Source of the DNA: Macrostomum lignano
Lineage: Eukaryota
DNA: 64,000 nucleotides
Assembly (NCBI GenBank): GCA_002269645.1
Contig: NIVC01001794.1
Span: forward strand, 172,790-236,789
Reading direction: 5' to 3'
The notes beneath the pieces were generated by a model that ran no database searches, was not told the origin of the DNA, and worked only from the letters and a program-made list of their open reading frames with translations. The position numbers were made by a program, and so were the translations under genes. Of this stretch, positions 6,558 to 64,000 are shown piece after piece. Each line of letters begins with the position of its first letter. The first letter of the stretch is position 1.

Positions 6558-12978
<6,421 letters not shown>

Positions 12979-22978: not shown

Positions 22979-22990
22979 TCCTCGTCGCCA
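22979..22990 (-). other. primer binding site, complementary to the tRNA-Ser(GCU) 3' end
   Basis: TGGCGACGAGGA directly after the 5' LTR and abutting the gag ATG; metazoan tRNA-Ser(GCU) ends ...CCTCGTCGCCA (from memory). Confidence 0.85.
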
Positions 22991-22991
22991 C

Positions 22992-23215
22992 TTTAGCAGA
23001 GTCAACTATTGCAATATTTGGCGGACGATAACAAAAACACGAGGGCTCAAAAGCCAGAATCAGTCGATATATATATTTTAATATTAGGCACGCACAAAGT
23101 ACGTGCGTACATTACAATCGATAAATTAAAAGGCAACTTGAGCGTGCCCCCAACCCCCCCAGCGCAGGCCAACCCCAAAACCGCAAATGCAAACTCTCAA
23201 TATCAACTCATCACA
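22992..23215 (-). repeat. 5' LTR
   Basis: Starts TGTGATGA on the element strand and is followed by the PBS. Confidence 0.97.
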
Positions 23216-23324
23216 ATACATGTATCATTAGGTTTAAGTTTAAGTTTTAGGATTAGGATTAGGATTAGGAAAAGTTTTTAGGATTAAGTTTAAAAAATTG
23301 CTTTTTAATACACCGACGAGCTAA

Positions 23325-24080
23325 TTTCAAGCATGGAGGATATTGTGAGCATGGAGTTCCTCCCGAGAGATGTTCTGAGCATGGAGTTCCTTCTGAGAGG
23401 TGTTCTGAGCATGGAGTTCCTTCTGAGAGGTGTTCTGAGCATGGAGTTCCTTCTGAGAGATGTTCTAAGCATTGAGTTCCTTCTGAGAGATTTTCTGAGC
23501 ATGGAGTTCCTTCTGAGAGATTTTCTGAGCATGGAGTTCCTTCTGAGAGATTTTCTGAGCATGGAGTTTCTCCCGAGGGATGTTCTGAGCATGGAGTTCC
23601 TTCTGAGAGATGTTCTGAGCATGGAGTTTCTCCCGAGGGATGTTCTGAGCATGGAGTTCCTTCTGAGAGATGTTCTGAGCATGGAGTTTCTCCCGAGGGA
23701 TGTTCTGAGCATGGAGTTTCTCCCGAGGGATGTTCTGAGCATGGAGTTTCTCCCGAGGGATGTTCTGAGCATGGAGTTTCTCCCGAGGGATGTTCTGAGC
23801 ATGGAGTTTCTCCCGAGGGATGTTCTGAGCATGGAGTTTCTCCCGAGGGATGTTCTGAGCATGGAGTTTCTCCCGAGGGATGTTCTGAGCATGGAGTTTC
23901 TCCCGAGGGATGTTCTGAGCATGGAGTTTCTCCCGAGGGATGTTCTGAGCATGGAGTTTCTCCCGAGGGATGTTCTGAGCATGGAGTTTCTCCCGAGGGA
24001 TGTTCTGAGCATGGAGTTTCTCCCGAGGGATGTTCTGAGCATGGAGTTTCTCCCGAGGGATGTTCTGAGCATGGAGTTCC
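23325..24080. repeat. 30-bp minisatellite (TGTTCTGAGCATGGAGTTTCTCCCGAGGGA), about 25 copies
   Basis: Direct tandem array, preceded by degenerate TTAGG(A) repeats at ~23229-23290. Confidence 0.98.
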
Positions 24081-24374
24081 TAGCATTTTTGTTTTTCAAT
24101 CAAAACAGCTAAATGAGCCTACGCACGTATAAATGCAACCAACTTCCAAACTGCCATTTACAAATTGCAGGCGAGCCATTTCCTGTTTGAAAATATGGCT
24201 GTAATAATGAGATTTCTTAATTTATTATTTCGCAATAAATTGAAACAAGTCTGTTTTAGATTCCAAGTTATTCCATTCTGTCTGACCATTAGTACTTTTT
24301 AATACGGAAAATTTTAGTGCAATGCTTCATTTTCCGTAGATTAAACTGCATTGATGCCTGCAGACAGAAACTAC

Positions 24375-26178
24375 TTAGAGGAGGCTCCTGCTGCTGCTGC
24401 AGTTGCAGGGAGCGGAGGTCTGAGCCGATGAGGCCATCTGTCTGGTCTGAATTATCAGGACAAAGTAGGTCATGAACAGGCTGGCCATCTGCAAAGTAAG
24501 ACCTGGCGATAGCATACTTGCAGTCCTTAGAAATCGGAACAAACAATTTCATCGGTAAATACTTACGCTGACGAGTAGAGAATAGTCAATGACGAAGAAA
24601 TTCGAGCACGTGAGACCGCACTCATTGTTCGATACGGCATGGAGGAATATCATAATCTGTAAATCAGAGGTGATCTAATAAAGCAATCGACCGACTAACA
24701 TTGCAATAGCAGTTTATTTGGAAAGTTCTAGACACAAGGAAAACAGTCTTCATGGACAGAGAGTCGGGAAAGGTACAGGGGCTCTATATACAGAGCAGAA
24801 GGGAGGGGCGCTGAGGAGTGAGAGCTGGCAAAAAGGGCTGACCAATCAGAGGGGGCGCTGAGGGGTGAGAGCTGGCAAAAAGGGCTGACCAATCAGGAGG
24901 GGCACTGAGGAGTGAGAGCTGGCAGAAAGGGCTGACCAAACAGGGGGGACCGAACGGTGGTTAGAAAAGGACAGCATTCAATCTCATCCATGACATTCCT
25001 ATTATTGCCCATGAACTCACCTCTTTATCATTCTTCGATGTTATTTCCAGCCGATGCAGAATTTCTAGCGGCTTCTTTGCCTGAGGAGAAAAATGCCTGA
25101 TAAAAGAGTGAACATTCCAGGGCTAAATAGACTATGGCGAGTAATGCCGCTGTTCACTTACCAAATTAAGGATGTGGCCACACACGAATACTACCATGCC
25201 TAGGATGAAAAGGCCCGCAACAAACCAGAACATCATGACAACTGCAGCGAGAAGGGACATGGTATTGAAGTCGAGAAGTGCATTCAGAATTAACATCACG
25301 GCGAACAGGACAAATATCAGCGTAATCCCGACGTAGTGCCTGAGCAGCGAGTCCAACCGGCTCACAACCTCCGTAATTTTCAGGTAGTACAGTCGGTACG
25401 CGGCGGCGCAGTCCGCGCTCAGTCCCGAGGACTCTTCGACCTGACTACTCAGCCCTGAGCAGAACCCGGAAAGCAAGTACGCTACGAGAAGACCAAACAC
25501 AACAAAGACGAAGAATCCGAAAATCCACAGAAATGTTTTGAAAATCCAGTAGAGCGCGACCACCACCTGCCAAGCGACTAGAAACCACGGCGCAGAGGTG
25601 ATGGGTGGCAGCGGCTCGGAGCTGCTCCAGCTTCCCACTGCGCTGATTCGGACGCTGAACTTGTAGGGCGGATCGTCCGGGTTTGTCATCACCAGGACGA
25701 TGCACATCGCTCCGTTGCCGACGCAAACCAGAGACACGATGGGGAAGAGACGTCTGAACAGTCGTCGGAATCGACCGAGTCGAGCTCGCAGCGCTCTGGC
25801 AAGAGTTGGTCGACCGGCGCTGCTGATGACAATGTTGTCAATGTCTCGGAGGAAGCTGCTGATCTTCCCGGTGCTTCCCAGAATCAGGTAGGCCGAGTTG
25901 ATGAAGCCGCTGTACAGAAAAAACAAGGCCGATAAGATGAGGAGAGTCGACTCGGCATTCAGATTGACCGGCACCTTCAGAAACAACGGCATGATCACGA
26001 GGCCTTCCATGTAGATTGAAAAATTAATTAGAACAGCCACAGATAGCCAGATAAAGCGTTGCTTTTTGGGAGCTTGAAACCTGGAAAACTCGAATACACT
26101 TAGAGTCCGTTGGGCTGAAACAGTGTGGAACTCGAATTCCTCTGCATCAGCTGGTGCAACTTGAATTTGTTGAGACAT
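24375..26178 (-). CDS. gustatory-receptor-like (Gr/GRL, 7TM ion-channel superfamily) protein, ~426 aa
   Basis: Long hydrophobic exon 26178-25162, then three exons joined by phase-0 introns: 25080-25021 (AKKPLEILHRLEITSKNDKE), 24656-24567 (IMIFLHAVSNNECGLTCSNFFVIDYSLLVS) and 24488-24375 (MASLFMTYFVLIIQT...). The GLTxxxFFxID and TYxxxxxQ signatures and the 3' phase-0 introns are Gr hallmarks. Confidence 0.85.
24804..24945. repeat. ~46-bp repeat, three copies, in a GRL intron
   Basis: GGGGCGCTGAGGAGTGAGAGCTGGCAAAAAGGGCTGACCAATCA repeated three times; the first two copies have CCAATCA, the third CCAAAC. Confidence 0.85.
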
Positions 26179-28021
26179 TGTAGCTGTGATACTTGTAGTT
26201 TCTATAGTTCTTGTAGTGCTTTCCTTCAAATTCCATGTGGTTACTGGAAGGTTTGGTAGGTAGTGTTCAATATATACGATCCACGTCCTCACCCAGAATT
26301 CCTCTGATTTGCTAGCGCTAATCTTCACTTCATGCTGTTTGAAGCTGATTTCATTGGTGAGGAACTGTTTCCATGACATCAATTTCTGTTTGCGAGGAAG
26401 TTTTTCTAGTGGATTGAATTCATTAATCGCCCGGAAGCACTTTATTATTGTTTCGCTAATCCATCAACTTCCTTTTGGTTCTACAGAGCTGCATGCACTG
26501 TAATCAAAGAATTATGTTCTGTTCTCCGTCCCTTTACTCTAATGTCGGAAGAATAAAATACTTCAGAGCATTGTTTGCGCTGACACGCGGCAGCTTCATA
26601 GCAATGGAGGACGACTCTTAGAAATTTCGTAATTCATTTTGTTGTATCTTTCAGTATAGCCGAATGCAATGCAATCATCAATACTGTATCGACATATGAG
26701 ACAATCGTGCGTAGACATCGATAATCAAATCAAGTTAATAAAGGGGATCCCTCAGAAAGAGCGCTTTGCTCTCCGCTATGCCTGTTTGTCTGTCCGTCGG
26801 TCTGAAGGTCGCGTATGTGCGGAGAGCAGACATATATTATACATGTAAAATGTATGCTCCAATGACCACTTGCAGTAAAACAGGACGTAAAACTAAAAGA
26901 TGGTGTAATTTTTGGAGGCAAATTTCCTGGACAGAATACACTGCGGAGATAGGAAAAGTTTTTTTTTCATCGCAAAATCAATGAATCTTGCATTTGATCC
27001 AGGACAGTGAATTGTTTACCATTATTTTAATTTAGCACACACAGCTTGCTGTTGTATTTTATGTTGTATTTAATTGTTTATACAGTGAACTTGTTTCATT
27101 TTCATACTTTTATTTTATTTTATATAAAACGCAAAGTTGTTAATTACTACTAACAAGTGGCATCAGGTGAACTTTTTGTTTTGTTCCTTTAATATATTCA
27201 AGTCAAGTCAAATCAAGGCTAGGGGCCTGCCCAATTATGCCAATTGTGAGCATTTACAAATTTTGGGCTTAAAAGTAATAAGGAATGAAAGTTTTACTGC
27301 ACAACTATATAAAATAAAGTACGTACAACAGAGTAACATGTTCTGCATGCTATAATTAAAAGACTGCATGGTAATCTTCGATATTTTTGAGATGAGGCTG
27401 TTTTCCCATCTCCTTAGAGTATTTTTCAGGAAATTGGCCTCCAAAAATGCACGATCTTTGAGTATACATACATGTACGTCCTGGTTGTCCTATAGTGGTT
27501 CTTGGTATATTCGTGAAGAAACGATAGAAAACTATGTACAACCTTATTAGTTAGAAAACAGCCGAAACAACCATAAGTGCTAGTTATGCACCGTCTGCAA
27601 ACACACTTGGACATCCAACTGTCATCCGGTTTTGGTTAAGCATTGTTTATAGTAGCTCAAGTCATATAATGTACGTATACGTACGTGTACCAGATCTTAA
27701 CAATCGAGCTACCGTTTACTTTTTTATAAAGTTAAAATCCTCTCCCCCGCTTGGTGTTGCAAGTAACGACCTATCTTTTAACTAATTGCAAAAAAAAATA
27801 CCAGGACCACTGCATATAGCAGAACGTAAAACTCATAATGCAGTAAAGTAAGTCCTTGAACAAAGTTATCTGGCAGTGTTGAGTTAACTGCATCGTCTTT
27901 TTTAACCGGCAATGTGTAAAGACAAACAAAGTTGTTTTCCTAAAATTTTCAGAAGTTTAGGTATATAAAATAACTACATCTTTTAGTTGTAAAGTGTATT
28001 TTTTTATACTAAAACTTGAAA

Positions 28022-28146: not shown

Positions 28147-31100
28147 ATGTCTCACATGTAAGTTGTTCTTGAAATTTATTATAAAATTTTCCTAAGATGA
28201 CAGCATTTGTTTTAGATCGCTTATTTTTACAGATAATGTTCTAATATTAACTCAACTACTTAACATGGGCAGCCTAATTTTGTCAGTTTTTACCAAAATC
28301 ATGAGAGGAAATGAAAGATATCACCGAGAATATAATTAAGTTTATTAATTTTTACGTACTTAAGAAACTTAGATAATCATATGATATTTCACTACCTTTT
28401 TTTAGTAATGTTTTTCTCATAGCTATTGTAATTATAATTACTTATTGAAATATTGTGTTTTAATCAAATAATTGGTACCATGATAAAATGATACGAAACT
28501 GATTCTTTAACAAAGGCGTTTTTTTTAATTTAAACTCATTGTCAATCAAGCTAGTAAAACCATGAACTATAATGACTATCACTCATTTCATTTAGAAAAC
28601 TTTTCACTTCAATGACAATTCTTGAACTTTGAAGCAGAATAAAGCACAAGGAGAGCTTAATTTTTGTAACAGACCCGAGTTTTTGTAACAAATCAAACTA
28701 TAATGTTCAAATATTCAGTTAAATATTATACAGTAACTTTATTTGCAGTTGTACATAGGAGATTACTACTTTTCCTAAAAAGGGAATTTTTTGTTATTTT
28801 CATTCATGTTAAATAATTTTGTAAAGAGATGAGGCTCTAAATATATGCAAAAATATTAAATTTTTATTTCACATATTTAGTATTCATTACTAAATATATA
28901 CATCTCAATACTAAAAATATCCATATACTAAAATGGTTTGTATGGTTCTTTAATTTTATATTCAGCATATTCTTCTTCTATTTACATATAAACAGAACCT
29001 ACAATAAGGAGTGGCGGGAGGCCCAGCAGGCCCTCGCTGACCTCTTCGAAAATGAGAAGCCACCGGAAGCTCAAAAACCTGAAAAGGTGAGATGGCACGC
29101 TGAATTTCCTTCTATTATAGTCTAAATAAATCACCAATTCCAATGCTTCTTATTCATATTTTTCTTCAGGACAAAGTGGCGTTCTTCCAGTTCCTCGCCA
29201 CCATGTACATCAAGTACATCCAGATCCTCCGCAAGCTGGAGGCCTGCTACGACCAGATTGTTCATCCGCAGAAGCGCCTGGTGCTGCGAAACGTCCTCGA
29301 CGGTGTCCTTGGCCGACTGCTCGAGCTCAAGCAGGAGATGGTGGACCTCGAGTGCCTGGAGTACCACTTCTTTGACGATATTTTGTCGGACCTGAAGCTA
29401 ACGCCGGTGAGGCTGTTGGGTTTAACGGTTGCAGGCGAAAAATTGGGCTGGTAGCCATTGGGCCGTTTTATTGGTTTCTGAGTTATTAGAACAGCATAAC
29501 CCCAAACTCTCAAAGCTGGTATTTAAAACTGGTATTTAACGTCACTCGTCTTCCAGAATGACGTCGAGATGCCGATTCCAAAGTACTTTGTGCTTGAGCA
29601 GGAGAAGAATCTTCGAGCTCGACAGCAGCTGCTTGGCCAAATTCTGGCCAAGATGGGGCCCAGCGAGAAGGAGGAGAAGGCGGCCGAGGTGAAGATGTCG
29701 CTGGAGGAGGCCATCCGCTTGGTGCAGGTGCACGAGCGCGCCAGGCAGGGCCGGCTGCGCGCCAAGTTCATGCGGGAGATCCGCGAGCAGGAGGAGAAGT
29801 CGCGGCAGGACGCCACCAGAGGCGCGCCGACACTTGACCCCGTGGACGCGGCCGTGCGGATTCAGAAGGTGCGCGGGGTCGGATGGAGCGGGGAGAGGAT
29901 TAATCTGTTATTTACGAGTGTATCAGGTGATGATGGTATCTAACATGTGACACAATCCCGTCTAACAGGTGACACGATCCTGTCTAACAGGTGACAAAAT
30001 CCTGTCTAACAGGTGACACAATCCTGTCTAACAGGTGACAAAATCCTGTTTAACAGGTGACAAAATCCTGTCTAACAGGTGACACAATCCTGGCTAACAG
30101 GTGACAAAATCCTGGCTAACAGGTGACAAAATCCTGTCTAACAGGTGACAAAATCCTGTCTAACAGGTGACACAATCCTGGCTAACAGGTGACAAAATCA
30201 TGTTTAACAGGTGACAAAATCCTGTCTAACAGGTGACAAAATCCTGTTTAACAGGTGACACAATCCTGGCTAACAGGTGACACAATCCTGGCTAACAGGT
30301 GACACAATCCTGGCTAACAGGTATCACAGTCCTGTTCAACAGTCAAAACTCCTCTCTAAGACAATGACACAACCGAATAAAAACGTCTTATATTTCTAAA
30401 AGTGCATGCTAGAGATTAAACAAGCGCTAATATATTTATCCGCCCAATTTTCCCAAAAAAAAATCGAACACCCGATTGCAGCACTGGAAAGGTTTTTGTA
30501 CCAGAAAATTTTCCCGGCGGGAACGCGACGAAGAGATGGTGTTCATCGGCATGGTGAATTCCGGCAGCCTGTTTCTCTAGATGTTGTGTTGTACTTTTAT
30601 TCTTAGTCCATTTTTCACTGCTTGTAGTGTTTTTTATGTTGTGCATCTGTTTTGTTATTATTTCATTTAATTAATGTTGTGCTCCCACTTTACTCAACAC
30701 TGACAGCTGTGGCGCGGAGTGATGATTCGTAGAAAAGTCACTCGACTCCGAGATGACGAATTCGTCTGGCTTGGAATGGTAAAGTATTGGCACGGGACTC
30801 TGATTGAATAGCAGCTTGTTGGCTAAAACTGCGCTTTAATCCGTGGTGATTGATTTTCTAACTGGTCTCCTGATTGCTAGGATTCTGCATGAGTTGCTTA
30901 TGCGGCGCGAACAATAACGCACTATATATATGAAGCGATAACGCGCCTCTCGCTCTCCCCGGTAAAGCATCCGTGTGTGCGTGTGTGTTCTCCGAGGTCA
31001 GCGGAATGGGTCGACTGTCGCCTTACACTCAATTAACGAACTGTAACTTTAATAAACTATTATAAATATTGGTAAAGAACCGCTATAATTTGATACTCAC

Positions 31101-34100
31101 TTCGTAATGAAGGCTCTTAACAGCAACATTCACTCATTGATTGTCAATCTTCATTTAACGCTTTTCCAATACAACTTGTACAGCTTTTCTCAGCCTAAGT
31201 AAAACATCAAAATCTCATCAAACAATGTCACTTTCCCGCAGAACCCACCAGCTCAGTTCCTGACCGCCAAGAAGTCAACAGCACAGGTGCATGCTCTGAA
31301 GGTGCAGGACATGCGCCGGGTCACCCAGTCGATGCACAGGCAGGAGTACGACCAGGCGCTCGTCACCATCAAGGAGAAGCTGCGCGAGACTGAAGGCCCC
31401 GACATGAAGGAGACAATGCAGGACCAGATCCGGCAGTGGTTTCTGGAGTGCCGAGATGCCACGGGCAAATTTCCAGACTACCCTGACGGAGAGGAGGGCA
31501 GCGCGGAGCTGTTCAAGCAGAAGAGCGTGGCGGAGCTGGAGCGCGAGCTCAAGGAGAAGGTGCGGGACTCCGCTTCTGCTGCTTGCTTTTTTGTCCGGGA
31601 AACTTGGCACAGTCTCCTGCTCCTGTTTGATGTTCGATTTAACACTTGTCTCCATTTGTTCTCAATCTAAACCCATTATCAAGGAGGAAGGCGGCGGCAA
31701 AGGCAAGGGCGGCAAGAAAGGCAAAAAGGGCGGAAAAAGCGGCGGCAAGAAGGGCAAAGACGCCAAAGGCAAGAAAGGCGGCAAGGGCAAGAAAGGCAAA
31801 AAGGACGACGTAAGTTTCAGTGGATGTTTTAAATACGAGCGTACTGGAATTTCTATTTTGCTTCCTGTGCTGTTTGGCTTCCCTGTCTGTTAGTCGGTAG
31901 GATTTCTTTGTGTGGCATGTGGGGTGGGGGTTTGTGGGGTAGGGGTTTGTGGGGTAGGGGTTTGTGGGGTAGGGGCTTTTAGAGTGGGGGTTGTGGGGTT
32001 GGGTTTTGTGGGGTGTGGGTTTGTGGGGTGAGGGTTTGTGAGGTGGGGGTTTTTGGGGTGAGGGTTTGTGGGGTGGGGGTTTGTGGGGTGAGGGTTTGTG
32101 GGGTGGGTTTGTGGGGTGTGGGGTTGTGGGGTGAGGATTTGTGGGGTGAGGGTTTGTGGGGTGGGGTTTAGTCTTTAGGTGAGGGTTTGTGGGGTGGGGG
32201 TTTGTGGGGTGGGGGTTTGTAGGGTGAGGGTTTGTGGGGTGAGGGTTTGTGGGGTAGGGGTTTGTGGGGGAAGGCGTTTGTGGGGTAGGGGTTAGTGGGG
32301 TGGGAGTTTGTAGGGTGGTGGTTTGTGGGGCATCGTTTTTGGTCGCAGTTGCTCGTACTTATTCTTAGTTTGTGGGTTGGCTAAGAATATTTGAACTATT
32401 TGACCTTTCTTGCTCATAAAAATCCACAGGACGATGACGAAGGCCTAAAGATGAAGGAGTCGAAATTCACGGGCGATATCGGCAGGGCTATGCAGGAGTA
32501 CGAGAGTAAGTGCATTGGCACTCGCCGATAGAATTCGTTTTTTATAACGCCGTTTTTTATAACAAAAAATCTAAGTTTTTTATTTCAATTCACCACATGC
32601 AGGCATCTGGAAGCTGAGAGACGAGTCGGACAATTTCCAGCAGAAGCACGACTCCGAACTCATCAAGGAGGCCAAGCGGGTTGAGGTTGAACGGGAGATC
32701 CGTCAGCAAGTTGACGAGCTGATGCGCCAGGAGCTGCAGAACCTCAAGGTGGCCATCGACAAGGAGAAAGTTCGCAAAGGCAAAAAGTCCGGCAAGAAGA
32801 AGAAGGGCAAGAAGGGTGAGCGCGAGAAAAGATTTACATTCGCGCCAATTTTCTTTGTTAAAACGGTTCCGTATTTCAGTTTTCTAAGAAAATCTTAGCG
32901 CACTTTTTCGAATTCTGATTCCAGGAAAGAAAGGCAAGAAGGGTAAATGACTGCTCGCTAACAGTTTTGCACTCTGTTGTTAGTCTCATGTACTTTTAGC
33001 CTCTCATACACTTTAAGTGTAAATTACGCGCGGACTTTTCAATTTTCTTAGATATCCAATCAACGGTCAATAAATTTGCATTATTTTCAGGCAAGAAGGG
33101 TAAAAAAGGAAAGAAAGGTACAAATATGTAGACACATGTTCGACTCGTTTTTTTCCGCATTCTGATCACAAAATTTCTGTGTTAGTCTTTAGAAGATATT
33201 TTGAGTCGTAGTATATCTTATCAAAGTGTATTGTTTATGCAATTTAATGCTAAAACATGCTATCTATAGCTTTAGAAGATATCTAACAAAATGTTTATAA
33301 AACACACATGCAGTCAGGATACGCATGCGTTCCAATCAAAGTCAGTAGATGCCGAAACTTTATAAAGCAAGCAAGTTAGAGCTGAAAATTATCAACTTAT
33401 CTAACCGAAATTACCTAAAAATAAAGTTTCCTAGAAAAAAATTGATTTACATGTATTCGAATTTTAAATGATTAACAGGTAAGAAGTCTGGCAAGAAGGG
33501 CAAAAAGGGCAAGAAGGAGAAGGACCTGACACCCGACTCAACTATTGAGGAGCTGTTCGAGGAGCTCGTGATGAATGGCATTATCAAGAAGGTGAGCACC
33601 GAGCTTCTTTTGCCAGTGTTCTGATGTTCATCTTCTTATGTACGCATTTGCATGTAACATTTCCATGTAAAACTAGTGAATTCGTCATTCTCTTCACATT
33701 CTGATGCACTTCCTCGTGTACACATCCTCATGTACACATTATCATGTACCCATCCTCATGTACACATCCTCACGTACACATCATTATGTACCCATCCGCA
33801 TGTACACATCCTCATGTACACATCCTCACGTACACATCCTCACGTACACATCCTCACGTACACATCCTCATGCAGCACGTCCTCATGTACACATCCTCGT
33901 GTACGCATCCTCATTTACACATCATCATGTACCATCCTCATGTACAAATCCTCGTGTACACATCCTCATGTACACATCCTCATGTACACATCCTCACGTA
34001 CACATCCTCATGCAGCACGTCCTCATGTACGCGTCCTCATGTACGCATCCCCATGTACCCATCCTCACGTACACATCTTCATGTATACAAATGTACACAT

Positions 34101-36041
34101 ACTCACGTAGACATTCTAATGTGCTCACTCTCGATGGACTCTGCTTCCCCAGGTGCCCAAGGTCAGCATGGCGGACTACGAAGGCGAGTACAACTACTTG
34201 GGCACCACTCTGAAGCAGGCCAACTTGGAACCGATGCCATCCTTAGCGGACGTGAGGCGCACCGTGTCAGAGCTGGCCTGCCTGCCCATGGGCTCCGAGG
34301 TGGTGCACAAGAGTGCGCCTCTCGTTAAAAGCCTCTTACTCGCTGGGCCGTCCGGTATCGGCAAGAAGATGCTGGTGCACGCCATCTGCACGGAAACCGG
34401 AGCAAATCTGTTCGACCTGTCGGCTACCAACTTGGCGGGAAAATATCCTGGCAAGGACGGCCTGCGGAGGCTGATGCACCTCATCTTCAAGGTAGGCACT
34501 TTTTTAGCTCTCTTCTACTATATTTTATTAAGAACTAATTTGACCGATAAGTATCGAAAACTAATTTGACTAATATGTATCGAAAACTAATTTAACCGAT
34601 ATGTATCAAAAACTAATTTCACCGATATGTATCGAAACTAATTTTGCCGATATGTATCGAAAACTATTTCGACAGATAAGTATTCACAAGTGATAGTGAA
34701 TCAATAATATCTTCAATTCCGACAGGTGGGCCGAGCCTTGCAGCCAAGCGTCTTCCTAATAGACGACTGCGACAAGATGTTCAAGAAGAAGATTCCCAAG
34801 AGCGACACCGTGAGTTTTTTAGTATTTTATTTTTTGCTAAATATTCCGCAAGAAATGCGTCGATTCTACTTAAAGTAAAATGTAAAATATATTATGTAGA
34901 ATTTTACGTTCTCTACACAGGATTCAGAGTCGATAAAAATCCAGTAAAAATATGTACTGCTAATGGCATTTGTGAGGGTATGAACGAATTCCTGGAGCAA
35001 CTTCTCACTTGTCGTCACGGAAAAAAACAAAAAAATATTTTGGCAGATGAAGTCACCAACTGTTTTTACAATTTTTCAATGTCACGTTTCCTAAGAGATG
35101 TTTTATTTGCGCTGCCATTAACTTCGACAATATTCGTAAATTAACCGAAGACTTTCCAATTAATCCTCAGTCCGACCCCAAGCGTCTGAAGAAGGAGCTG
35201 CCGAAGGCCATGAAGAATGTCAAGGTCGACGATCGGCTTCTGCTGGTTGGCTGCTCGCGTTCGCCCTGGGAGGCCGAAGTGAAACCGTTCTGCAGCCTCT
35301 ACCAGCGCATCCTGCTCATCCCCAGGCCGGATTATGCGTCCAGGCACCGTGAGTGCTGCTGGCTGGGGTTTACAGGAGCTTAGAGACACCAACCGGACAT
35401 TGTCGGGATCAGATCTATTAGGAGAGACAACAAACCAGATGAAATTTTTTGGGATGGATCTATGGGAGAGACACCAACCCGGATGTACATTGTCCGGGTG
35501 AGATCTATGGGGAGAGACACCAACCCGGATGTACATTGTCCGGGTGAGATCTATGGGGAGAGACACCAACCCGGATGTACATTGTCGGGATGAGATCTAT
35601 GGGGAGAGATGTAATGCACTGTTGCACCGATTAGAGATTTCGCGCACTCCAAACGCACTCCCCGCAGTGATCTGGCGCCGTCTCCTAGCCAAGCACAATG
35701 GCATCATCACCGGCGCCCTTGATGTGAGCACCCTGGCCAAGGTGACGGACGGCAACACGATGGGGCAGATCAAGCTGTGCTGCGAGGAGATTCTCACCGA
35801 GCGCCGTCTGGCCCAGATGGCCAAGCGGCCGCTGACCACCCAGGAGTTCATCCCGGTCATCGCCCGCCGCGAGTTCGTCCACTCCGAGGAGGAGGAGGCC
35901 TTCAAGAAGTGGTACGACAGGACGCCCCTCGGCAAGAAGCGGGCGAAGGCGATCGCAGCAGACGAGGAGGAGGCCCAGGGCGGCGGCAAGGGCAAGGGAA
36001 AGGGCAAAGGAAAGGGCGGCAAGAAGGGCAAGAAGAAGTGA
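28147..36041 (+). CDS. IQCA1: IQ motif and AAA-domain protein 1 / dynein regulatory complex subunit 11
   Basis: About 17 exons. MSHITYNKEW (28147-28157 + 28996...), [43 protein letters not shown], Walker [11 protein letters not shown], Walker [10 protein letters not shown]-terminal [12 protein letters not shown]...GKKGKKK; collinear with human IQCA1. Confidence 0.96.
29945..30322. repeat. 22-bp intronic minisatellite (TAACAGGTGACA[A/C]AATCCTGTC)
   Basis: About 17 tandem copies. Confidence 0.96.
31915..32325. repeat. G-rich ~15-bp intronic minisatellite (GGGGTGAGGGTTTGT)
   Basis: Degenerate tandem array of G-runs. Confidence 0.93.
33715..34105. repeat. 14-bp intronic minisatellite (TACACATCCTCATG)
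   Basis: Degenerate tandem array; explains the His/Thr-rich ORFs. Confidence 0.93.
35395..35630. repeat. ~46-bp intronic tandem repeat
   Basis: GAGATCTATGGGGAGAGACACCAACCCGGATGTACATTGTCCGGGT, about 4-5 copies. Confidence 0.9.
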
Positions 36042-36379
36042 GCAGAACCGATCCATTGAGAGCCAAGAAAGTCTCACTCAGAGCTCGCTTGCTGAGCAAA
36101 GTTGTACTGAGTACGCCGATTTTTATTACTTCTGCTTGCATGTTTTTGTTTCACTCCGCTATCGTCCATTCGTGTTTTAAATTTATCTGCAACAGCAAAC
36201 AAGCTGGTGACTGTGAGCAAGTTTGTTCGTTTTTAAATTTATTGAAGATTTAATAAAAAATAACAGAAACACGAAAGTTTTTCCGGCTTTCTAATGCGAA
36301 CTATAAACACAATCAATTTGTTTTCTTGTTGCAGACGGCCTTTAAAACTTTTTTACCACCATCCCTAACATTACTAACC

Positions 36380-37118
36380 TAACAGCCCCCTCCCCAACAG
36401 CCCCCTCCTCAACAGCCCCCTCCCCAACAGCCCCCTCCCCAACAGCCCCCTCCTCAACAGCCCCCTCCCCAATAGCCCCCTCCCCAACAGCCCCCTCCTC
36501 AACAGCCCCCTCCCCAACAGCCCCCTCCCCAACAGCCCCCTCCCCAACAGCCCCCTCCCCAACAGCCTCCTCCCCAACAGCCCCCTCCCCATCAGCCCCC
36601 TCCCCAACAGCTCCCTCCCCAACAGCCCCCTCCCCAACAACCTCCTCCCCAACAGCCCCCTCCCCAACAGCCCCTCCCCAACAGCTCCCTCCCCAACAGC
36701 CCCCTCCCCAACAGCCCCCTCCTCAACAGCCCCCTCCCCAACAGCCCCCTCCCCAACAGCCCCCTCCTCAACAGCCCCTCCCCAATAGCCCCCTCCCCAA
36801 CAGCCCCCTCCTCAACAGCCCCCTCCCCAACAGCCCCTCCCCAACAGCCCCTCCCCAACAGCCTCCTCCCCAACAGCCTCCTCCCCAACAGCCCCCTCCC
36901 CATCAGCCCCCTCCCCAACAGCTCCCTCCCCAACAGCCCCCTCCCCAACAACCTCCTCCCCAACAGCCCCTCCCCAACAGCTCCCTCCCCAACAGCCCCC
37001 TCCCCAACAGCCCCTCCCCAACAGCTCCCTCCCCAACAGCCTCCTCCCCAACAGCCTCCTCCCCAACAGCCCCCTCCCCAACAGCCCCCTCCCCAACAAC
37101 CTCCTCCCCAACAACCTC
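36380..37118. repeat. C-rich 15-bp minisatellite (CCCCAACAGCCCCCT)
   Basis: About 50 copies just downstream of the IQCA1 3' end. Confidence 0.97.
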
Positions 37119-37502
37119 CTTAACGGCGTACTTTAAGAGGCCACTAGACGCGTTTAAGACGTCGAAACTGAACGGACGCCAAGAAAAATGGCGGCTTATT
37201 GGGTTACCAAGCGACGCATGAAAACAGATAAACACTACTCTGTACAAAAGCACTATCGTTGAGTGAGTAGCCATAATAATCTCTCACGCGAACAAACTTA
37301 AGACGAAGAAATCTTGTTTCTCTTTAGTCTAGCAGACACCAGAATGGCGCTAGCCCTTGGAAGGCAGCATTCCTGCTCGATACACAGACTACAAAAACTA
37401 TACCATCAGCTCCGCTTATAGGAGAAGCGCCATCTTCTAAGTTTGACTTTGCACTACTCCCCAAACAGACAGGTCTCGAACTTGCAGGCTTACAGGCTTG
37501 TC

Positions 37503-39964: not shown

Positions 39965-40781
39965 TTCAGTACTGTTGCGCCCGGGTGCACTTGCACCGAT
40001 GAGCAATCTCTGGCTCTCGGTCAAGTGTGCCCGACACTGCACTCCCACCCCTCCCGGCCGCTTACCTGCGCCAAGCCCCCCGTTCCGTCTGCGTCAACCC
40101 CCCCCCCAGTTGCACCCACCCCACTGTCTGTTAGGTCAGCCGGTTTTGGCTGGCTGCGGCTCCAGTGCGCCCCCTCAATCGCCCTGCGATTGGCTGGTGG
40201 TCCAGCTAATCGGTTTGTATTCTTTCCCCCTCCAATCGCGACCCCGACTTTGTAACTTTTATAAGACGATCGTAATTTTGGCTAGCTGGGCCTGGGGTAG
40301 CGATACCCCAGGGCTTAACCAGCTAGCGTAAATACAAATGTGTGCAGGAGCGGCGGTAGGGGAGGCATCTTTTTGGTTGAATTGTGCAAGACACAGCCAT
40401 AAGTTCTAGTATTGCAATCAGACCCGAAGTTATACTCGGTTACTCAGAAGTTACCCAGCCAGAACTGAAGAGCGAAGTTGAGAGAAGCCACAGAATATAC
40501 ACAGAATGGTGTTATCAAAAAATACACGTGCAGGCAGCACAAGCTAATCGAAAAGTCTTTTACGCTTATCCTTATCTCTTTACATTGACTTTTAATACAT
40601 ATAGCCTAGGGCGCTTAGCTTAATCTACGTCAATTTAATTGCACTACTTTTCGCCACCTCATCATTAGTAGTCTATGAACATTTTATTCCGATAACTAGT
40701 TTAAGAGCTAATTCACCATTCTGTGTATATTCTGTGTCCCTTACTGCCGTCGCCGCTGCTTCGTGAAGATAAAAGAGTGAG

Positions 40782-41525
<744 letters not shown>

Positions 41526-42214
41526 CAGTTAGCTGGAAATACTCCTAGGGATTAAAGCGGCTCATTTGCTCTCAGCTGTCCCCCACCATATTCCCCACAT
41601 TTACTCACATATCCTCAGATCTATACTTATCTCTATCCAATAATCCTCACTTTTACCCACCAACACCTTTAATCACCCATTCCCACCTCTAATCATGACT
41701 TCTATCCATCCTTACCCACCATTCTCAACCCTCCTAACTGAAACTTCGCTAACAAAGAGCTGTCTGTTCATCCGTTTTAAAACGAACTTCCGGATTCAGG
41801 AGCGTAGGGGCTCACATATTCAAATGGAGGCAAACTGGACCCAGTTTTGGTATTGCAACGAGCGATGTAAAAAGAGCGATGTAAAAAGAGCGATGTAATT
41901 ATTAATTATTACCAAATTCACTTGAAGAAAAGGAGTAAAACAGGATTAACCGAAAGGCAACAATCACCCCAATAACACGAAAATGTTTATTTAATTAAAC
42001 GATACAGAATACAGCAGCAGAATTCAATCAGGCCTTCACCAATCTGCAATAGATTTGCTTTCAGAAAAGTTACATTCCGATCTGTAAGCAGTCATTTCAC
42101 TTTTCAGCCTACAGCAGAGTGCAGCCTGAGCTTGAATTTCTGCAACAAAATATAGGCGGTGAGAGAATCAAGCAATTCCTGCTATTCATTGTCTGTGGCT
42201 CAACAATGAAGTTA

Positions 42215-57205: not shown

Positions 57206-60200
57206 TCAGGCATCGCCGATCAGGGCCAGAAGAATCTTGCGATAATCGCCGCTGGTGTCGTCCTTGATCCATTCGGCGAGGCTCTGCCCGAACTCCTTCT
57301 GGAAGGCGGTCTTGATCTGAACCATGTCCACCTCGCAGCGGCTGATCACGATGCGAAGCAGCGTCTTGTCGTTGGTGCCTGGAGACGAATAGAGGGCGTT
57401 GAATAGAGGATGTGCAACCGACAGCTCAGCCGCAGCTATTGCGCGGCGCATCTGAAGGCTGCTGCGTACGGCTGTTCAGACCAAGGACTGGAGGGTTGCC
57501 ACACGTACCCTCAATTACCCCAGCTAATGCTGGCACCCATTTTACCGCTGGGTGAACTGAAGCAATTCAGAGTTGAGTGTCTCGCTCAAGGACAAATTGT
57601 TCCAGCGGGATCGCGGATCGAACCCCTGACCCCGTTCAGTCGTGAGTTCAACGCTCTAACCACTACGCTACAACCCCATCAGACCAATCAGGAATCCAGA
57701 GTGTCTCACTCGCTGACTGCGGATCGGTTGTCGCCTTGAATAGTTACAACATTAGGACAGATATTTTTGCCATCAACCCCTCCCTTTCACTTAAAGTGAC
57801 ACTTTAAATATAGAAAGTCTGAAAACCTCAAAGTTTTTTTACACAATGCTCAATTTCTTGAAAAATTTTCCCACATTGCTTGTCACGCTCGCTCGATCCT
57901 TTTCTCTCTGATTGAGCATGATTGAGTCACTTACCCAGGCCCTTCATCGCCTTCTGCAGCGACTTAGCAAAATAGGCCGGCTTGTTCTGAATGCAGCGGA
58001 CCAGAGTCAGCATGGCGCGGAGCAGGTCGCCAGACATCTCCGCCTTCAAGGAGTCCTCGAGCGTCTTGCCGGTCAATTTCTCGTATTCGGCAAACAGGGC
58101 GCGCAGGTGGGCGTTGTTGTTGCCGCAGAGGATCTCGTTGAACTTGCTCTCGTCCGTGCCCCACTTGCCGACGCCGGCCTCCTGCAGGGCCTGGGCGTCC
58201 TTCTTCACCTGCTCCGGATCGTAGGAGCTGCCCTCCGGCCGGGCGCCGGTGAGCAGAGACACCAGAATGCGCTTGAAGTGGCCGGATGTGTCCGACATAA
58301 CGTCGTCCTCAAGTTCGCGATTGTAAGCTGAGTTTGGTGTGCGGTATTGGAGTCGAAGAGTTGTTAGAAAGTTCATGACTCATTGGGATGGAATTTTGCA
58401 CGCTGTTTTTAGTTGTTTTCAGTGCGTGGTGTGTTTCGCCTTTCAGGGTCAGAGGGTGAGTTTCGTGAGCCAATAGTTGCTGTGTCTATAGTACGTAGTG
58501 CATTGTGCCCTTCAGGAGTCAGAGAGCTTTTCTGAACAAATCGTTCGGTTCCAGTAGATTAACCATCCATCTGGAATGCTTATTTTGGCCAGGGCATACA
58601 ATATGAATCTGATCACTGAAAGCGGAGCAAACTCACTGGCTTTGTAGATTTTCTTGATCTCCTCGATTTGGGCCTGCGTTCTGGTGCAGATGACCTCAAT
58701 CAGGCAGTCCTCGTCCGTGCCCAGGCCCTTCACCGCCTCGCGAAGCTCTTTAGCGTCGTACTCGGCCGGTCCCAGGCACAGATTCTGGCAGATCTTGTTG
58801 AAATTGCCGCTCAGCTCGCTGTCCAACTCGCGTTTGAGATCTTTGCCGTATTTCATCTTGAAGGTGCGCACAATTTCCATACGCTGGGTGACGGTCCGAT
58901 GGCCGAGCACGTTGATGATGCTCTCTTCGTTGGTGCCCAAACCTTTCATCGCCTTGCGCAGCTGCTCCGCATCGGCCGCAGCGCTGAAGTTCGGATACGG
59001 CTTCAGCGTGCCCTCCTGGACGTACTCCTCCTGCAAGAAGAAGGCCTCCCCGGCCGGCTCTGGTGGCTTTTCCTCCTTCAGCACAATGGCGTCCGCCTTC
59101 TCGTGGTCGGTCTTTTTCACCTGTAGAAAGTGCAATTTTGCAATTTTTGCAATACTTTCTGCTGCAGACACCGATGACTAATAGAGCACACAGATCTAGT
59201 TATTCGCACCTCAGTCTCCACTTTGTGACTTGGCGGCGGCGGCGGCTTCTCCGCCTTCTTGGGCGGCGGCGGCGGGGCGGCGGCGCAGGGTCCCTGCTGG
59301 CACTCTTTGAGGGAGGCATAAACGGCTTCGGTTTTGGATCCGAGCTCCGCTTGTTGATTGACTTTGGCGCGTGCAGCGGCTTCTTGTGCCCCGGCTTGGC
59401 GATGTGGATGGTCAGTAGGAATGAGTCGTCTGACTCGTCAAGTTCAGCTGACAGCACCTGCATCGGCAATGTGGAAAACTTCAAGCTTCTCATCGGCTTT
59501 AGAGTGACAGGCTCGGCGCGAGCAGGATAAAATTTCTTAGAAATTAAGACCAATTTGATTATTTCATGAGTAAGCTTACCTTGCCAAATTTCTGGTCCTC
59601 AATGGCAGCTTGAAATCCTCCATCTTTCCGCGCGAACTGCAGCAAGTGCGCGTAGACGTGCTGCAGCTGAGTTTTAAAGTCGCCGTCGCCCTTGCTGACA
59701 GGCAGGCAGGGCGGATCGGCGACGATCTTCTCAACCTTCTCAGTCTTCTTGGACTCGTCCACTAGGCGCCGGATGTCGTCCAGGGTGCTCTTGCGAGTCT
59801 CGTCCATGCGCTGCGACAGCTGTTGAGTCAGCTGGTTCAGCTGCTGCGGAGTCACGCCCTGTTGTGTGTTTTTTTCGCAACTAGTAAGAAAATGTTGTGC
59901 CAGCACCAACTTTAAGTAGGTTTTTAAGTATGAGCCCCCCGAGGGCCCTGACATTTTCACTCTGCAGTGTCCTCCCTCCCGTCCCGGCAGCATTCTAATC
60001 TAGCCACTCGTACGCTTGTAGCAAGCTTGGTGGCGGCGGGTCACTGCCGGCGTGAGCGCGTCAACTTTTACGATATTAGGGCCAATTTTTTCCTACGATT
60101 AGAAAAACGTAACGCCTAAAGATGAGACAGTTTTTAGCGCACAGATTTCCCAGATCTGCCTTTATGCTCGTATGGGAAAAGTTTTAAAGAAAAGGTCTGA

Positions 60201-61395
60201 AATTTTCGTGTTAGGAAGACACTTGGTGGCAATGACATTTAACTTCAACCGTATCTTAGAGTTATCCAAAAGGTTTTAGCAACAATCTAAATTAGCAACT
60301 AGCGATCGTTGACGATATTTATAGATAAAGGCACTTGTTTAAGCAGGTAAAAATGCCTAAAATCAAAGCATGACAATTTTTGAGCAGCACGTTGAATGGA
60401 GCACTTATTACCTGCAGCGAAGGGTCTGGCAAAGCGGGCACGGCGCTGGGCGGCTGGCCTGGGAAGCCGCCGCGGAAGTTCACATCGTTTGGGGTGCGCA
60501 CCTCCCAGCCGAGGCCCCCGGTGGGACGCCCGCTGCGCCGCCTCCGTACAGGTTGATCTGCGTGCCGGAGTGATTGACAGCTGAAAAGCCCTGGTCAGGC
60601 ACCGACGAAGCTGAGAGATCGTCAGCCGGGTCTGTCCTTTCCCAGGCTTCGTACGGACCGCTGGCAGCTGCGGCAGCCGCCGAGGCACCACCAGCACCGG
60701 AGCGGCGCAGGCGATCGCGGGAGTTGCTGCGTCTGCCGCCGCCGTTGCGCCGTCGCGTCGAAGGCCGTCTCGAGGTCGCTGTCCCAGCTGGAAAGTTCGA
60801 CGGGATTTCGAGGATATGAGGGTTAGGGTTAGGGTGTGTGCACCTGTATATATATATATATGTTCTCAGAGAAACGACCAATGCACTCAACCCATACTTC
60901 AGCAGCTACAACAGCACTAATCGCTCACCCATTAATATCGGAGTTGCTGACGCTGCTCTGATCAAGGCAGTCGTCGATCTCGTTCCAACCGTGCACATCC
61001 TCGCAGTGATAGGTTCGTGAAGTGACGAAACTCTGCTGCTTGGTGACGCGGTGCATGGCAACCGATTTGACAATGCGTTTGCCCGGCTTCAGGCAGAAAG
61101 GAGCCCGGTACTGGAATGTGACCTCGCGACCGTTCAAAAATCGCTTGTTGGGATCCGGTCGCGTGCCGTCGGTTGTGAAGAAAATGTTGCAGTTGTTGCT
61201 CTCTGAAACGTGCAACGGTTGTTTTATAGATAGCCTTCACAATTTAAGTGATTAAATCTAACAAAAATCAAAATCAGTAGCGCACCGGTGGACATTTCAA
61301 TGTAGGTTGAGTGTCGATGCAGGTGCTGGCTTGCCATTCACGTGGCTCCTCAGCGGCGTAACGACTGGGGCTGCAATTCCGCCTGCGGACGGCAT
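57206..61395 (-). CDS. annexin (four-repeat core) with a long N-terminus including a DZANK1-like Fn3-associated/chitobiase-type domain; frameshifts in the N-terminal exons
   Basis: Core motifs KAMKGLGTNE, AVKGLGTDEDCLIE, GKWGTDESKF, GTNDKTLLRIVISRCEVD and DDTSGDYRKILL at 57206-59120. Upstream exons 61395-61286, 61202-60928, 60788-60415, 59880-59580 and ~59535-59209 have canonical splice sites and join in phase if single-base indels are corrected. Confidence is high for the core and lower for the fusion. Confidence 0.8.
57410..57680 (-). mobile_element. tRNA-derived CORE-type SINE, copy 3, in the last annexin intron
   Basis: Reverse complement shows TAGCGTAGTGGTTAGAGCG (A box), GGTTCGATCC (B box), the CORE segment and the same 3' body. 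Confidence 0.85.
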
Positions 61396-62507: not shown

Positions 62508-63138
62508 ATGGACCCTGGAGCATCAAACTGGGACGTTTCAAAACGTTATAAAACAGACGTTCTAGTCGGAAATTGGTTTGAAGAACGACTAGTGTACGAT
62601 AGAAAGAACCATACGCATCCATCGAGCTACAGCATCGACTTTCAACAAAGGGGATACCAGCAGCCAGATGTTGTGCTTCGAAGGAACGGCTGATTCGCTC
62701 TAACGAGTAGGTAAGGAAATACTGCTAGCCCATCACGGCGATGCCTACAAGAAAAACTGGATCACTTGGTACGACGAGGACTTCAACGGTCGAGGCTTGC
62801 CTAGGAACCCCCCGCTGCGCGACTGGCACTCTGGCAACATGGCCTGGAGCCCGGAGCGCTCAGACTTCCCGCGTCCAGGGCAGCCCGACCAACTGGGGCT
62901 TGAAGGAAAGACTAGACAAGCGATGGAATACCAGTCTACAGGAGCGCTCGCCACCACGTCAAAGAATGACTTCAGTACTACGTACAACGCGTCATATCTG
63001 AAGCCGAGAACGGAGGACCTGCTGGCTGCACGACAGCCGAGCTTCCTGCCACCAATCAGCGGGAGGATGCCGGCAAACACCGGCAGTCAGGACAAGTTCG
63101 AGGAGCCGGCCCAGAAGCTGTCGGTCGTGGCCACCTAG
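62508..63138 (+). CDS. CFAP107: cilia- and flagella-associated protein 107 (C1orf158), intronless here, with four apparent frameshifts
   Basis: Segments KRYKTDVLVGNWFEERL, QPDVVLRR, KEILLAHHG...ITWYDEDFN...NPPLRDW...WSPERSDFP, PTNWGL and STTYNASY follow human C1orf158 (KYSTKVLTGNWMEER, PPLRTW, WLPEKSDFP, PTNYGL, STYTSSY) but switch frames. Confidence 0.82.
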
Positions 63139-63504: not shown

Positions 63505-64000
63505 CTTGAAGCAGTGAAATGGATGGATGAAGCACTTGAAGCAGTGATATGGATAGATGAAGCAGTGAAATGGATCGATGAAGCACTGATATGGATGGAT
63601 GAAGCAGTGAAATGGATGGATGAAACAGTGAAATGGATGGATGAAGCAGTGAAATGGATGAATGAAGCAGTGAAATGATGGATGAAGCAGTGAAATGGAT
63701 GGATGAAGCAGTGAAATGGATGGATGAAGCAGTGAAATGGATGGATGAAGCAGTGAAATGGATGAATGAAGCAGTGAAATGGATGGATGAAGCAGTGAAA
63801 TGGATGGATGAAGCAGTGAAATGGATGGATGAAGCAGTGAAATGGATGGATGAAGCAGTGAAATGGATGAATGAAGCAGTGAAATGGATGGAGGAAGCAG
63901 TGAAATGGATGAATGAAGCAGTGAAATGGATGGAGGAAGCAGTGAAATGGATGGATGAAGCAGTGAATGAATGGATGAAGCAGTGATAATGGATGGATGA
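63505..64000. repeat. 21-bp minisatellite (GAAGCAGTGAAATGGATGGAT)
   Basis: Tandem array running off the window end. Confidence 0.97.

Follow-up and report, generated by a model that had tools for sequence, protein, structure and literature searches.

Gene organisation at the annexin locus

In the current study we describe a chimeric annexin gene within a 64,000-nucleotide stretch of genomic DNA (contig NIVC01001794.1 of GenBank assembly GCA_002269645.1, positions 172,790 to 236,789 of the forward strand), the whole of which is hereafter called the window. The gene occupies positions 61395 to 57206 of the minus strand, with its ATG at 61395, and its predicted product joins a head resembling the protein DZANK1 to an annexin core. 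All the peptides that a first-pass annotation of the window had quoted from it were located on this strand, and the limits given there for the gene proved to be the exact start and stop codons.

Three-frame translation combined with a splice check resolved eight exons, all of them bounded by GT/AG and with mutually consistent phases (Table 1). Between 62500 and 56500 of the minus strand the coding blocks are GC-rich and the introns AT-rich, which is the organisation of a eukaryotic gene. With the frames joined, and an X placed at each frame break, the conceptual product measures ~779 amino acids. It begins with an Fn3_assoc beta-sandwich, followed by a low-complexity region that holds a GTQIN motif and by a helix; a second DZANK1 module comes next, and a Pro/Lys linker connects it to an annexin core of four repeats.

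Table 1. Exons and linker motif of the annexin gene, in positions of the window
Feature	Position	Strand	Content
Exon 1	61286..61395	-	Start codon; initial strands of the DZANK1-type N-terminal domain, MPSAGGIAAPVVTPLR...TYIEMST; two single-base gaps
Exon 2	60929..61202	-	Intact; main N-terminal beta-sandwich (Fn3_assoc / CHB_HEX_C_1), ESNNCNIFFTTDGTRPD...SDING
Exon 3	60412..60787	-	Low-complexity linker with conserved block PDQGFSAVNHSGTQINLYGG and WEVRTPNDVNFRGGF; two frame changes
GTQIN motif	60552..60566	-	Within exon 3; conserved in 8/10 full-length fusions
Exon 4	59580..59858	-	Intact; Gln-rich helix QQLNQLTQQLSQRMDETRKSTLDDIRRLV and first half of the DZANK1 mid-domain SKGDGDFKTQLQHVYAHLLQFARKDGGFQAAIEDQKFGK
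Exon 5	59210..59457	-	Beta-hairpin at the end of the mid-domain VLSAELDESDDSFLLTIHIAKPG, then Pro/Lys-rich linker; one frame change
Exon 6	58637..59120	-	Linker end EAFFLQEEYVQEGTLKPYPNF, annexin repeat 1 and start of repeat 2; KGLGT in each
Exon 7	57935..58327	-	Rest of annexin repeat 2, repeat 3 and beginning of repeat 4; preceded by a phase-1 intron
Exon 8	57206..57378	-	Annexin repeat 4 and TGA stop (57208-57206)

The annexin core contains four matches to Pfam model PF00191 (310.9 bits, cut-off 25; E = 1.2e-94). Taking K-G-x-G-T with an acidic residue ~38 residues downstream as the criterion for a type II calcium site, KGLGT and the downstream D/E are present in repeats 1, 2 and 4, and in repeat 3 the motif takes its usual variant form, GKWGT. 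Annexin cores are by default expected to bind acidic membranes in a calcium-dependent manner, and this would be expected of the present core as well because KGLGT and the acidic ligand are kept in repeats 1, 2 and 4. The core groups loosely with A4/A7/A11/B12-like annexins (53-57% identity). A homologue search with the core did not return the Macrostomum lignano protein A0A267EJ83 and delimited no distinct annexin subfamily. None of the vertebrate annexins among its matches carries the DZANK1 module; the first-pass annotation had stated the same of the N-termini of known vertebrate annexins.

Two of the introns contain repeat-like sequences. At ~57600-57700 of the minus strand, intron 7 includes a tRNA-like stretch with A-box/B-box-like sequences (GTAGCGTAGTGGTTAGAGCG ... 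GGTTCGATCC), which suggests a tRNA-derived short interspersed nuclear element; ARAGORN and Rfam gave no match in the annexin gene region, this stretch included. In intron 2, a short telomere-type repeat (CCCTAACCCTAACCCT; ~60815-60830 of the minus strand) adjoins a (TA)n run.

The head and the annexin core belong to one gene

The conceptual protein shares 76% identity over 746 aligned residues with a 764-amino-acid protein of M. lignano (PAA61558.1 / A0A267EJ83), rising to 85-88% within the annexin core, and the exon junctions of the two genes are shared. When this protein was used as a tblastn query it was collinear across all eight window exons, including the junction between exons 5 and 6, where the orthologue reads NHKMETE followed by VKQTSHEKADAI and the window SHKVETE followed by VKKTDHEKADAI. 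In tblastn, P0018 and P0001 covered all window exons in order. Besides, a metagenomic animal contig, L001, contains an uninterrupted open reading frame (ORF) of 633 codons which opens with MPSAGAVAPP, covers head and linker and reaches annexin repeat 2, and the 54-nt, phase 1 intron that follows it is located at the same position as window intron 6.

At least nine taxa, with proteins predicted by independent pipelines, have the fusion as a single protein, and exon 6 contains no in-frame Met upstream of annexin repeat 1. Considering the collinearity with A0A267EJ83, the 633-codon ORF of L001, the single predicted proteins and the lack of a Met before repeat 1, we conclude with high confidence, on the strength of sequence comparison, that the head and the annexin core constitute one protein-coding gene, orthologous to that of A0A267EJ83, and that its product has the architecture of a chimeric annexin. 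The central proposal of the first-pass annotation, namely that a DZANK1-like N-terminal module and an annexin are encoded together, is thus upheld by the collinearity with A0A267EJ83, the L001 ORF and the Met-less exon 6. Past its 54-nt intron, the L001 gene (9995-13561, plus strand) reads repeats 3-4 and then a second complete annexin tetrad with no stop, giving eight repeats.

The head comprises two DZANK1 modules

Pfam assigned Fn3_assoc (30.4 bits, cut-off 23) and CHB_HEX_C_1 (24.1 bits, cut-off 22) to the head, and unedited exon 2 alone scored 27.0 bits for Fn3_assoc, so both head models named in the first-pass annotation, and the annexin model with them, lie above their cut-offs. In BLASTP, the head aligned with mammal-type DZANK1 (P0152) from residue 2 of both proteins (33% identity, E = 1e-15), and a profile of the N-terminal domain (N-domain) searched against PDB sequences matched a single entry, chain G1 of 11xu (DZANK1), with E = 9e-26. 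At the sequence level, the similarity between the head and DZANK1 is far above what chance would give. The predicted structure of the N-domain is all-beta (predicted template modelling score, pTM, 0.70). Foldseek against a PDB library extending to 2026-04-08, which does not include 11xu, found no significant match for the models of the N-domain and the mid-domain; those of the N-domain were weak and Ig/PKD/FnIII-like.

The first-pass annotation had recognised the DZANK1 likeness at the N-terminus. This stands for the Fn3_assoc domain, but the likeness is not limited to it, as a second DZANK1 module, the mid-domain, is encoded by exons 4-5 (SKGDGDFKTQLQHVYAHLLQFARKDGGFQAAIEDQKFGK continued by VLSAELDESDDSFLLTIHIAKPG) with the pattern SxGxGxxxxQxxHxxxHL...MGK. 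This module aligns with Mya DZANK1 (BLASTP, E = 1e-9), and a hidden Markov model (HMM) built for it matched all the fusion and DZANK1 proteins tested (22/22); no Pfam model covers it in scans of the window head and its relatives. AlphaFold2 predicted a long helix followed by a helix-helix-beta-hairpin unit for the region, with a per-residue confidence (pLDDT) of ~90. DZANK1 and the window head have in common an Fn3_assoc-type beta-sandwich and, after it, a mid-domain (SPGRGYWRKQ..HL...FRALI.EP.MGK, 32% identity; family pattern SPGxGxWxxQxxHxxxHL...F.A.I.EP.MGK). The two modules are separated by a helix and by a TQ-containing stretch that is a candidate shared motif.

On the other hand, the window protein differs from DZANK1 in having neither double zinc ribbons (PF12773) nor ankyrin repeats, and in the addition of an annexin core. 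Pfam found no DZR or other zinc-ribbon match in the window head or in any of the fusion proteins, whereas DZR is present in P0096 and P0086. The window and the protostome fusions likewise had no Ank match, a domain that was found in DZANK1 and in the fusion of Asterias.

Regarding the motif between the modules, [NH][YH]SGTQ[IV]N is present in 8/10 full-length fusion proteins, the extended block being [NH][YH]SGTQ[IV]N[VL][WY]G. In the window, SGTQINLYGG stands where DZANK1 has TQTVGLFYP, in a region of ambiguous alignment. We read TQTVGLFYP of DZANK1 as a putative TQT-type motif for binding of LC8/DYNLL, and GTQIN is a candidate counterpart of it.

Distribution of the fusion and its relation to DZANK1

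When the N-domain profile was used in an exhaustive HMM search, 3149 proteins were recovered. Word searches were less productive, the one with the whole head being dominated by low-complexity words (one match) and the one with the N-domain yielding fragments only. Among the HMM matches listed, most of those with many stretches are long and carry between 4 and 41 copies in tandem, and they are presumed to be bacterial. Proteins matched once, at the N-terminus, were of two kinds, Fn3_assoc+DZR+Ank, i.e., true DZANK1, and Fn3_assoc+annexin. True DZANK1 is represented by Ciona, Mya, Pinctada, Batillaria, Tubulanus, M. lignano and mammal-type sequences. The fusion was found in flatworms (M. lignano, Schistosoma rodhaini, Echinostoma and Anoplocephala, with head-bearing fragments in Mesocestoides and Dibothriocephalus), molluscs (Bradybaena and Candidula, with a fragment in Nucella), the brachiopod Lingula (one model named 'annexin A11'), the nemertean Tubulanus and Priapulus.

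The order of parts seen in the window, i.e., N-domain, GTQIN block, helix, mid-domain, Pro/Lys linker and annexin core, is the one common to these fusions, as in A0A267EJ83 / PAA61558.1, Lingula XP_013392205 and XP_013384296, Tubulanus XP_074652698, Priapulus XP_014664979, Bradybaena BFZ22448, and the proteins of Schistosoma rodhaini, Echinostoma and Anoplocephala. The number of annexin repeats is not the same throughout, the mollusc, priapulid and L001 proteins having eight or more, in contrast to the four of the window and flatworm proteins. Unlike its fusion homologues, the window copy has five frame breaks. Bradybaena has 8 annexin repeats and Priapulus 11 Pfam stretches, both being multi-tetrad like L001.

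A related form occurs in Ambulacraria. The 'DZANK1-like' protein of the starfish Asterias consists of Fn3_assoc, a TQT motif, the mid-domain, Ank and four annexin repeats; as in the window, isoform X1 of Asterias rubens (XP_033629438, 908 amino acids) combines a DZANK1-type head without zinc ribbons with a C-terminal four-repeat annexin, but unlike the window it keeps the canonical TQTVGLFYP and has ankyrin repeats between the mid-domain and the annexin. A Saccoglossus model with Ank and annexin was grouped with the Asterias form, and Glandiceps has a DZANK1-like protein with neither zinc ribbon nor annexin.

Both M. lignano and Tubulanus hold a true DZANK1 with DZR and ANK together with a fusion, and because of this coexistence the fusion is, judged by sequence, an old paralogue of DZANK1 and not DZANK1 itself. 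In a neighbour-joining (NJ) tree of the head, based on the N-domain and mid-domain (180 columns), the protostome fusions split off in 99/100 bootstrap replicates, so the phylogeny against true DZANK1 envisaged in the first-pass annotation places them apart, in line with the presence of both genes in M. lignano and Tubulanus. The flatworm fusions came together in 87/100 replicates, the window and the M. lignano fusion were paired in 200/200 (first run), and the fusions plus the two zinc-ribbon-less ambulacrarian proteins were separated from DZR-bearing DZANK1 in 61/100. When the DNA of the window was aligned with the M. lignano locus, exons alone aligned, at 70-85% identity, which by itself would suggest another macrostomid-like flatworm as the probable source; the contig is recorded under M. 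lignano. In the NJ tree of the annexin core, bootstrap support at the nodes of interest did not exceed 20, and the tree is uninformative on a single fusion event. A single ancient fusion is plausible. On the basis of the sequences found, the fusion is conserved in Platyhelminthes, Mollusca, Brachiopoda, Nemertea and Priapulida, with a form in Ambulacraria that keeps the ankyrin repeats.

It had been suggested that the fusion might exist unannotated in other invertebrates. It is indeed present in many of them, but already annotated under automatic names ('Annexin', 'annexin A11', 'uncharacterized protein' or 'DZANK1-like'). Full-text literature searches on DZANK1 with annexin and on Fn3_assoc with annexin gave no account of the head architecture, two surveys of helminth annexins are silent on it, and an atlas of the schistosome miracidium mentions a different, tegumental annexin and nothing else on annexins. 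The window gene is thus a further member of a catalogued yet unstudied family. Compared with what had been noticed at first, our results add that the head has a second DZANK1 module, that the fusion is a paralogue of true DZANK1 and that an ambulacrarian form retains ankyrin repeats. They also carry a lesson for annotation, as these fusions are filed as 'Annexin' or 'uncharacterized' and the second DZANK1 module is not modelled in Pfam.

A proposed role at the ciliary base

DZANK1 has been shown to bind DYNLL1/2 and NINL, to sit at the ciliary base and to be required for vesicle transport in zebrafish photoreceptors (PMC4617706). In a preprint, a DZANK1 dimer and an LC8 dimer are assigned to the outside of the A-tubule in the bovine transition-zone doublet, with one DZANK1 helix between protofilaments A06 and A07 (bioRxiv 10.64898/2026.06.11.731632). 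PDB entry 11xu is a solved entry of full-length DZANK1 with four chains, and it may be the transition-zone doublet structure of this 2026 preprint.

By analogy with DZANK1, we hypothesize that the annexin core would bind acidic membranes upon a rise in calcium, while the head would form dimers, attract LC8/DYNLL and attach to microtubules of the basal body or transition zone, as the same modules presumably do in DZANK1. The protein would thereby couple a vesicle or the ciliary-base membrane to a scaffold of microtubules and dynein light chain in a calcium-dependent manner, with the annexin taking over from the partner-binding zinc-ribbon/ankyrin part of DZANK1. We propose this tethering mechanism tentatively. 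The explanation as a whole, i.e., a chimeric annexin paralogue of DZANK1 that acts as a ciliary-base tether and whose frame breaks are assembly errors, is the one that we favour with moderate confidence.

The gene has a neighbour of interest for this proposal. CFAP107 (PF22595) is located head-to-head with it at 62508-63138 on the plus strand, its start codon lying 1112 bp from the annexin ATG, and this arrangement, already reported in the first-pass annotation, is confirmed by the Pfam match, the strand and the distance between the starts. As to the ciliary context that had been drawn from it, the adjacency is real but not conserved at two other loci, and has no X-box. CFAP107 is missing from the 8 kb around the M. 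lignano gene, the L001 gene is not beside CFAP107 and has a PDZ gene upstream, and scans for the X-box found no RFX X-box between the start codons of the annexin gene and CFAP107. Because the arrangement is not seen at the M. lignano or L001 loci and there is no X-box, we take the adjacency as weak evidence for a ciliary role and not as evidence of co-regulation. Like these observations on synteny, several features of the head weigh against the ciliary proposal: GTQIN is not a canonical TQT, the L001 protein has no GTQIN, and MAFFT pairs the TQT of DZANK1 with another stretch of the fusions.

A different role for the head would fit some of these observations. The gene would be real and the head, borrowed from a DZANK1 paralogue, would serve outside cilia as an N-terminus that dimerises or binds partners and thereby adjusts membrane aggregation, like the long N-termini of A7 and A11; we consider this a possible though rather doubtful explanation. 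LC8 is a general dimerisation hub and not specific to cilia, and annexin heads determine the place and the partners of each annexin. The N-termini are the usual regulatory and partner-binding part of the annexin family (PMC3795353). The synteny with a cilia gene that is not conserved, the missing X-box, and the loose position of the core near A4/A7/A11/B12-like annexins, at the identity given above, point in the same direction. Vertebrate A7 and A11 resemble the window protein in combining a canonical core with a long, partly Pro-rich, partner-binding N-terminal region, and annexin A6 has eight repeats as do some members of the fusion family, but the heads of A7 and A11 are of low complexity (Gly/Tyr/Pro) and have no folded domain. 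Against a non-ciliary head, the two DZANK1 modules, and possibly the motif between them, keep their order over very long evolutionary distances, suggesting that a DZANK1-type interaction is retained, and the sole documented sites of action of DZANK1 are the basal body and the transition zone.

If a tether at the ciliary base is nevertheless considered for the family as a whole, DZANK1-headed annexins might be conserved bilaterian calcium-switched tethers, in which the head, with LC8, would sit on A-tubules of the basal body or transition zone, with the annexin holding on to a vesicle or to the membrane of the ciliary base. An ancestral state would then be seen in the starfish form, and direct membrane attachment would be part of the ancestral job of the DZANK1 family, lost later in vertebrates, a broad generalisation that we regard as unlikely. 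DZANK1 is itself poorly understood, and a natural fusion hints that its head may be a self-contained docking module, which some animals may wire straight to membranes via a calcium switch. M. lignano is tractable for transgenesis, so localisation and knock-down of the protein are feasible.

Frame breaks and the integrity of the gene

As sequenced, the ORF from 61395 meets a stop after 32 codons and there is another stop in exon 3, so that the gene in its present form cannot yield the protein. Five frame changes are required in the head, two in exon 1 (~61322 and ~61310), two in exon 3 (~60747-60726 and ~60545-60513) and one in exon 5 (~59289-59258). Conserved peptides lie in three frames in exon 1, in frames a, b and a in exon 3, and pass from one frame to another in exon 5, where the change falls in a CCG/CCC run; each of the five breaks has homology to A0A267EJ83 on both flanks. 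The first-pass annotation had stated that the gene reads in one frame once single-base indels are corrected. No new start or stop then appears, but the five changes are more than had been implied. Alternative splicing that would avoid the frameshifts of exons 3 and 5 was ruled out, since conserved peptides sit in the shifted frames.

When exon 1 was aligned at the DNA level with its orthologous counterpart, the window showed single-base gaps at two points and no more, separated by 12 bases. The reading frame of CFAP107 shifts twice as well, within ~30 bases (~62690-62720) and with no intron. In total there are seven breaks, all of them within 59.26-62.72 kb and in two adjacent genes, and six of the seven behave as single missing bases. 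In contrast, neither the annexin core (1.05 kb) nor a retroelement ORF elsewhere in the window (3.97 kb) has any frame break, and the annexin gene has no substitution-type stop codons and all its splice sites intact. The ratio of nonsynonymous to synonymous substitution (dN/dS) against the M. lignano gene is 0.14 for head exons 2 and 4 and 0.11 for the annexin exons, both rough values as the synonymous sites are near saturation. These ratios indicate that the head and the core have both been under purifying selection in the past.

Because the seven breaks are clustered in 3.5 kb over two unrelated genes and there are none in the annexin core or the 3.97-kb ORF, a poorly polished patch of the assembly is favoured, and the five breaks of the head are probably local assembly errors. 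For genome annotation, this means that the stretch carries frame errors. The gaps of exon 1 tell against this explanation, as they are located outside homopolymer runs, unlike the classic error of long reads. They would suit a recent pseudogene or decaying duplicate, in which all seven frameshifts (five in the head, two in CFAP107) are real, as would the stops met after 32 codons and in exon 3; several copies of the gene exist in M. lignano, which makes redundancy plausible in the lineage. We regard such decay as improbable. The dN/dS of the head is near that of the core, there are no substitution stops, the annexin core is free of lesions, every splice site is intact, and the lesions are packed in 3.5 kb across two unrelated genes while the 3.97-kb ORF elsewhere is unbroken.

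That two genes were joined in error, one short and DZANK1-like and the other an annexin driven by a promoter of its own, is very improbable, for although introns 3 and 5-7 could conceal an alternative first exon and many database annexins of related flatworms are shorter models without the head, the L001 ORF is uninterrupted from the head into the annexin, single proteins are predicted in at least nine taxa, the exon 5/6 junction is matched in A0A267EJ83, the exon phases agree in the window, and exon 6 has no Met ahead of repeat 1.

Other features of the window

The retroelement used as a yardstick of frame integrity is located at 19034-23005 of the minus strand, where an unbroken ORF of 1323 codons was judged by eye to encode a gag-protease-RT-RNaseH-integrase polyprotein (RT, reverse transcriptase) of a long terminal repeat (LTR) retroelement.

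On the minus strand, an ADAM-like gene of several exons (6901-11666) encodes Reprolysin (PF01421), Disintegrin (PF00200) and an EGF-like piece. On the plus strand, a multi-exon gene at 29143-36041 encodes an AAA ATPase domain (PF00004) and a Lys/Gly-rich tail, and resembles, as judged by eye, the ciliary gene IQCA1/DRC11. An intronless ORF of 416 codons at 25132-26382 (minus strand) has several hydrophobic segments and no Pfam match, and may encode a lineage-specific membrane receptor.

Many micro- and minisatellites with long spurious ORFs occur, at 63514-63986 (plus strand), 489-1013, 7516-8031, 23265-24112, 36370-37280 and 40723-41532; they include (GA)n, (CTGT)n and (TCTA-type)n, a 21-nt unit that translates as WMDEAVK, another unit of 24 nt, and hexamer-like repeats rich in Pro.

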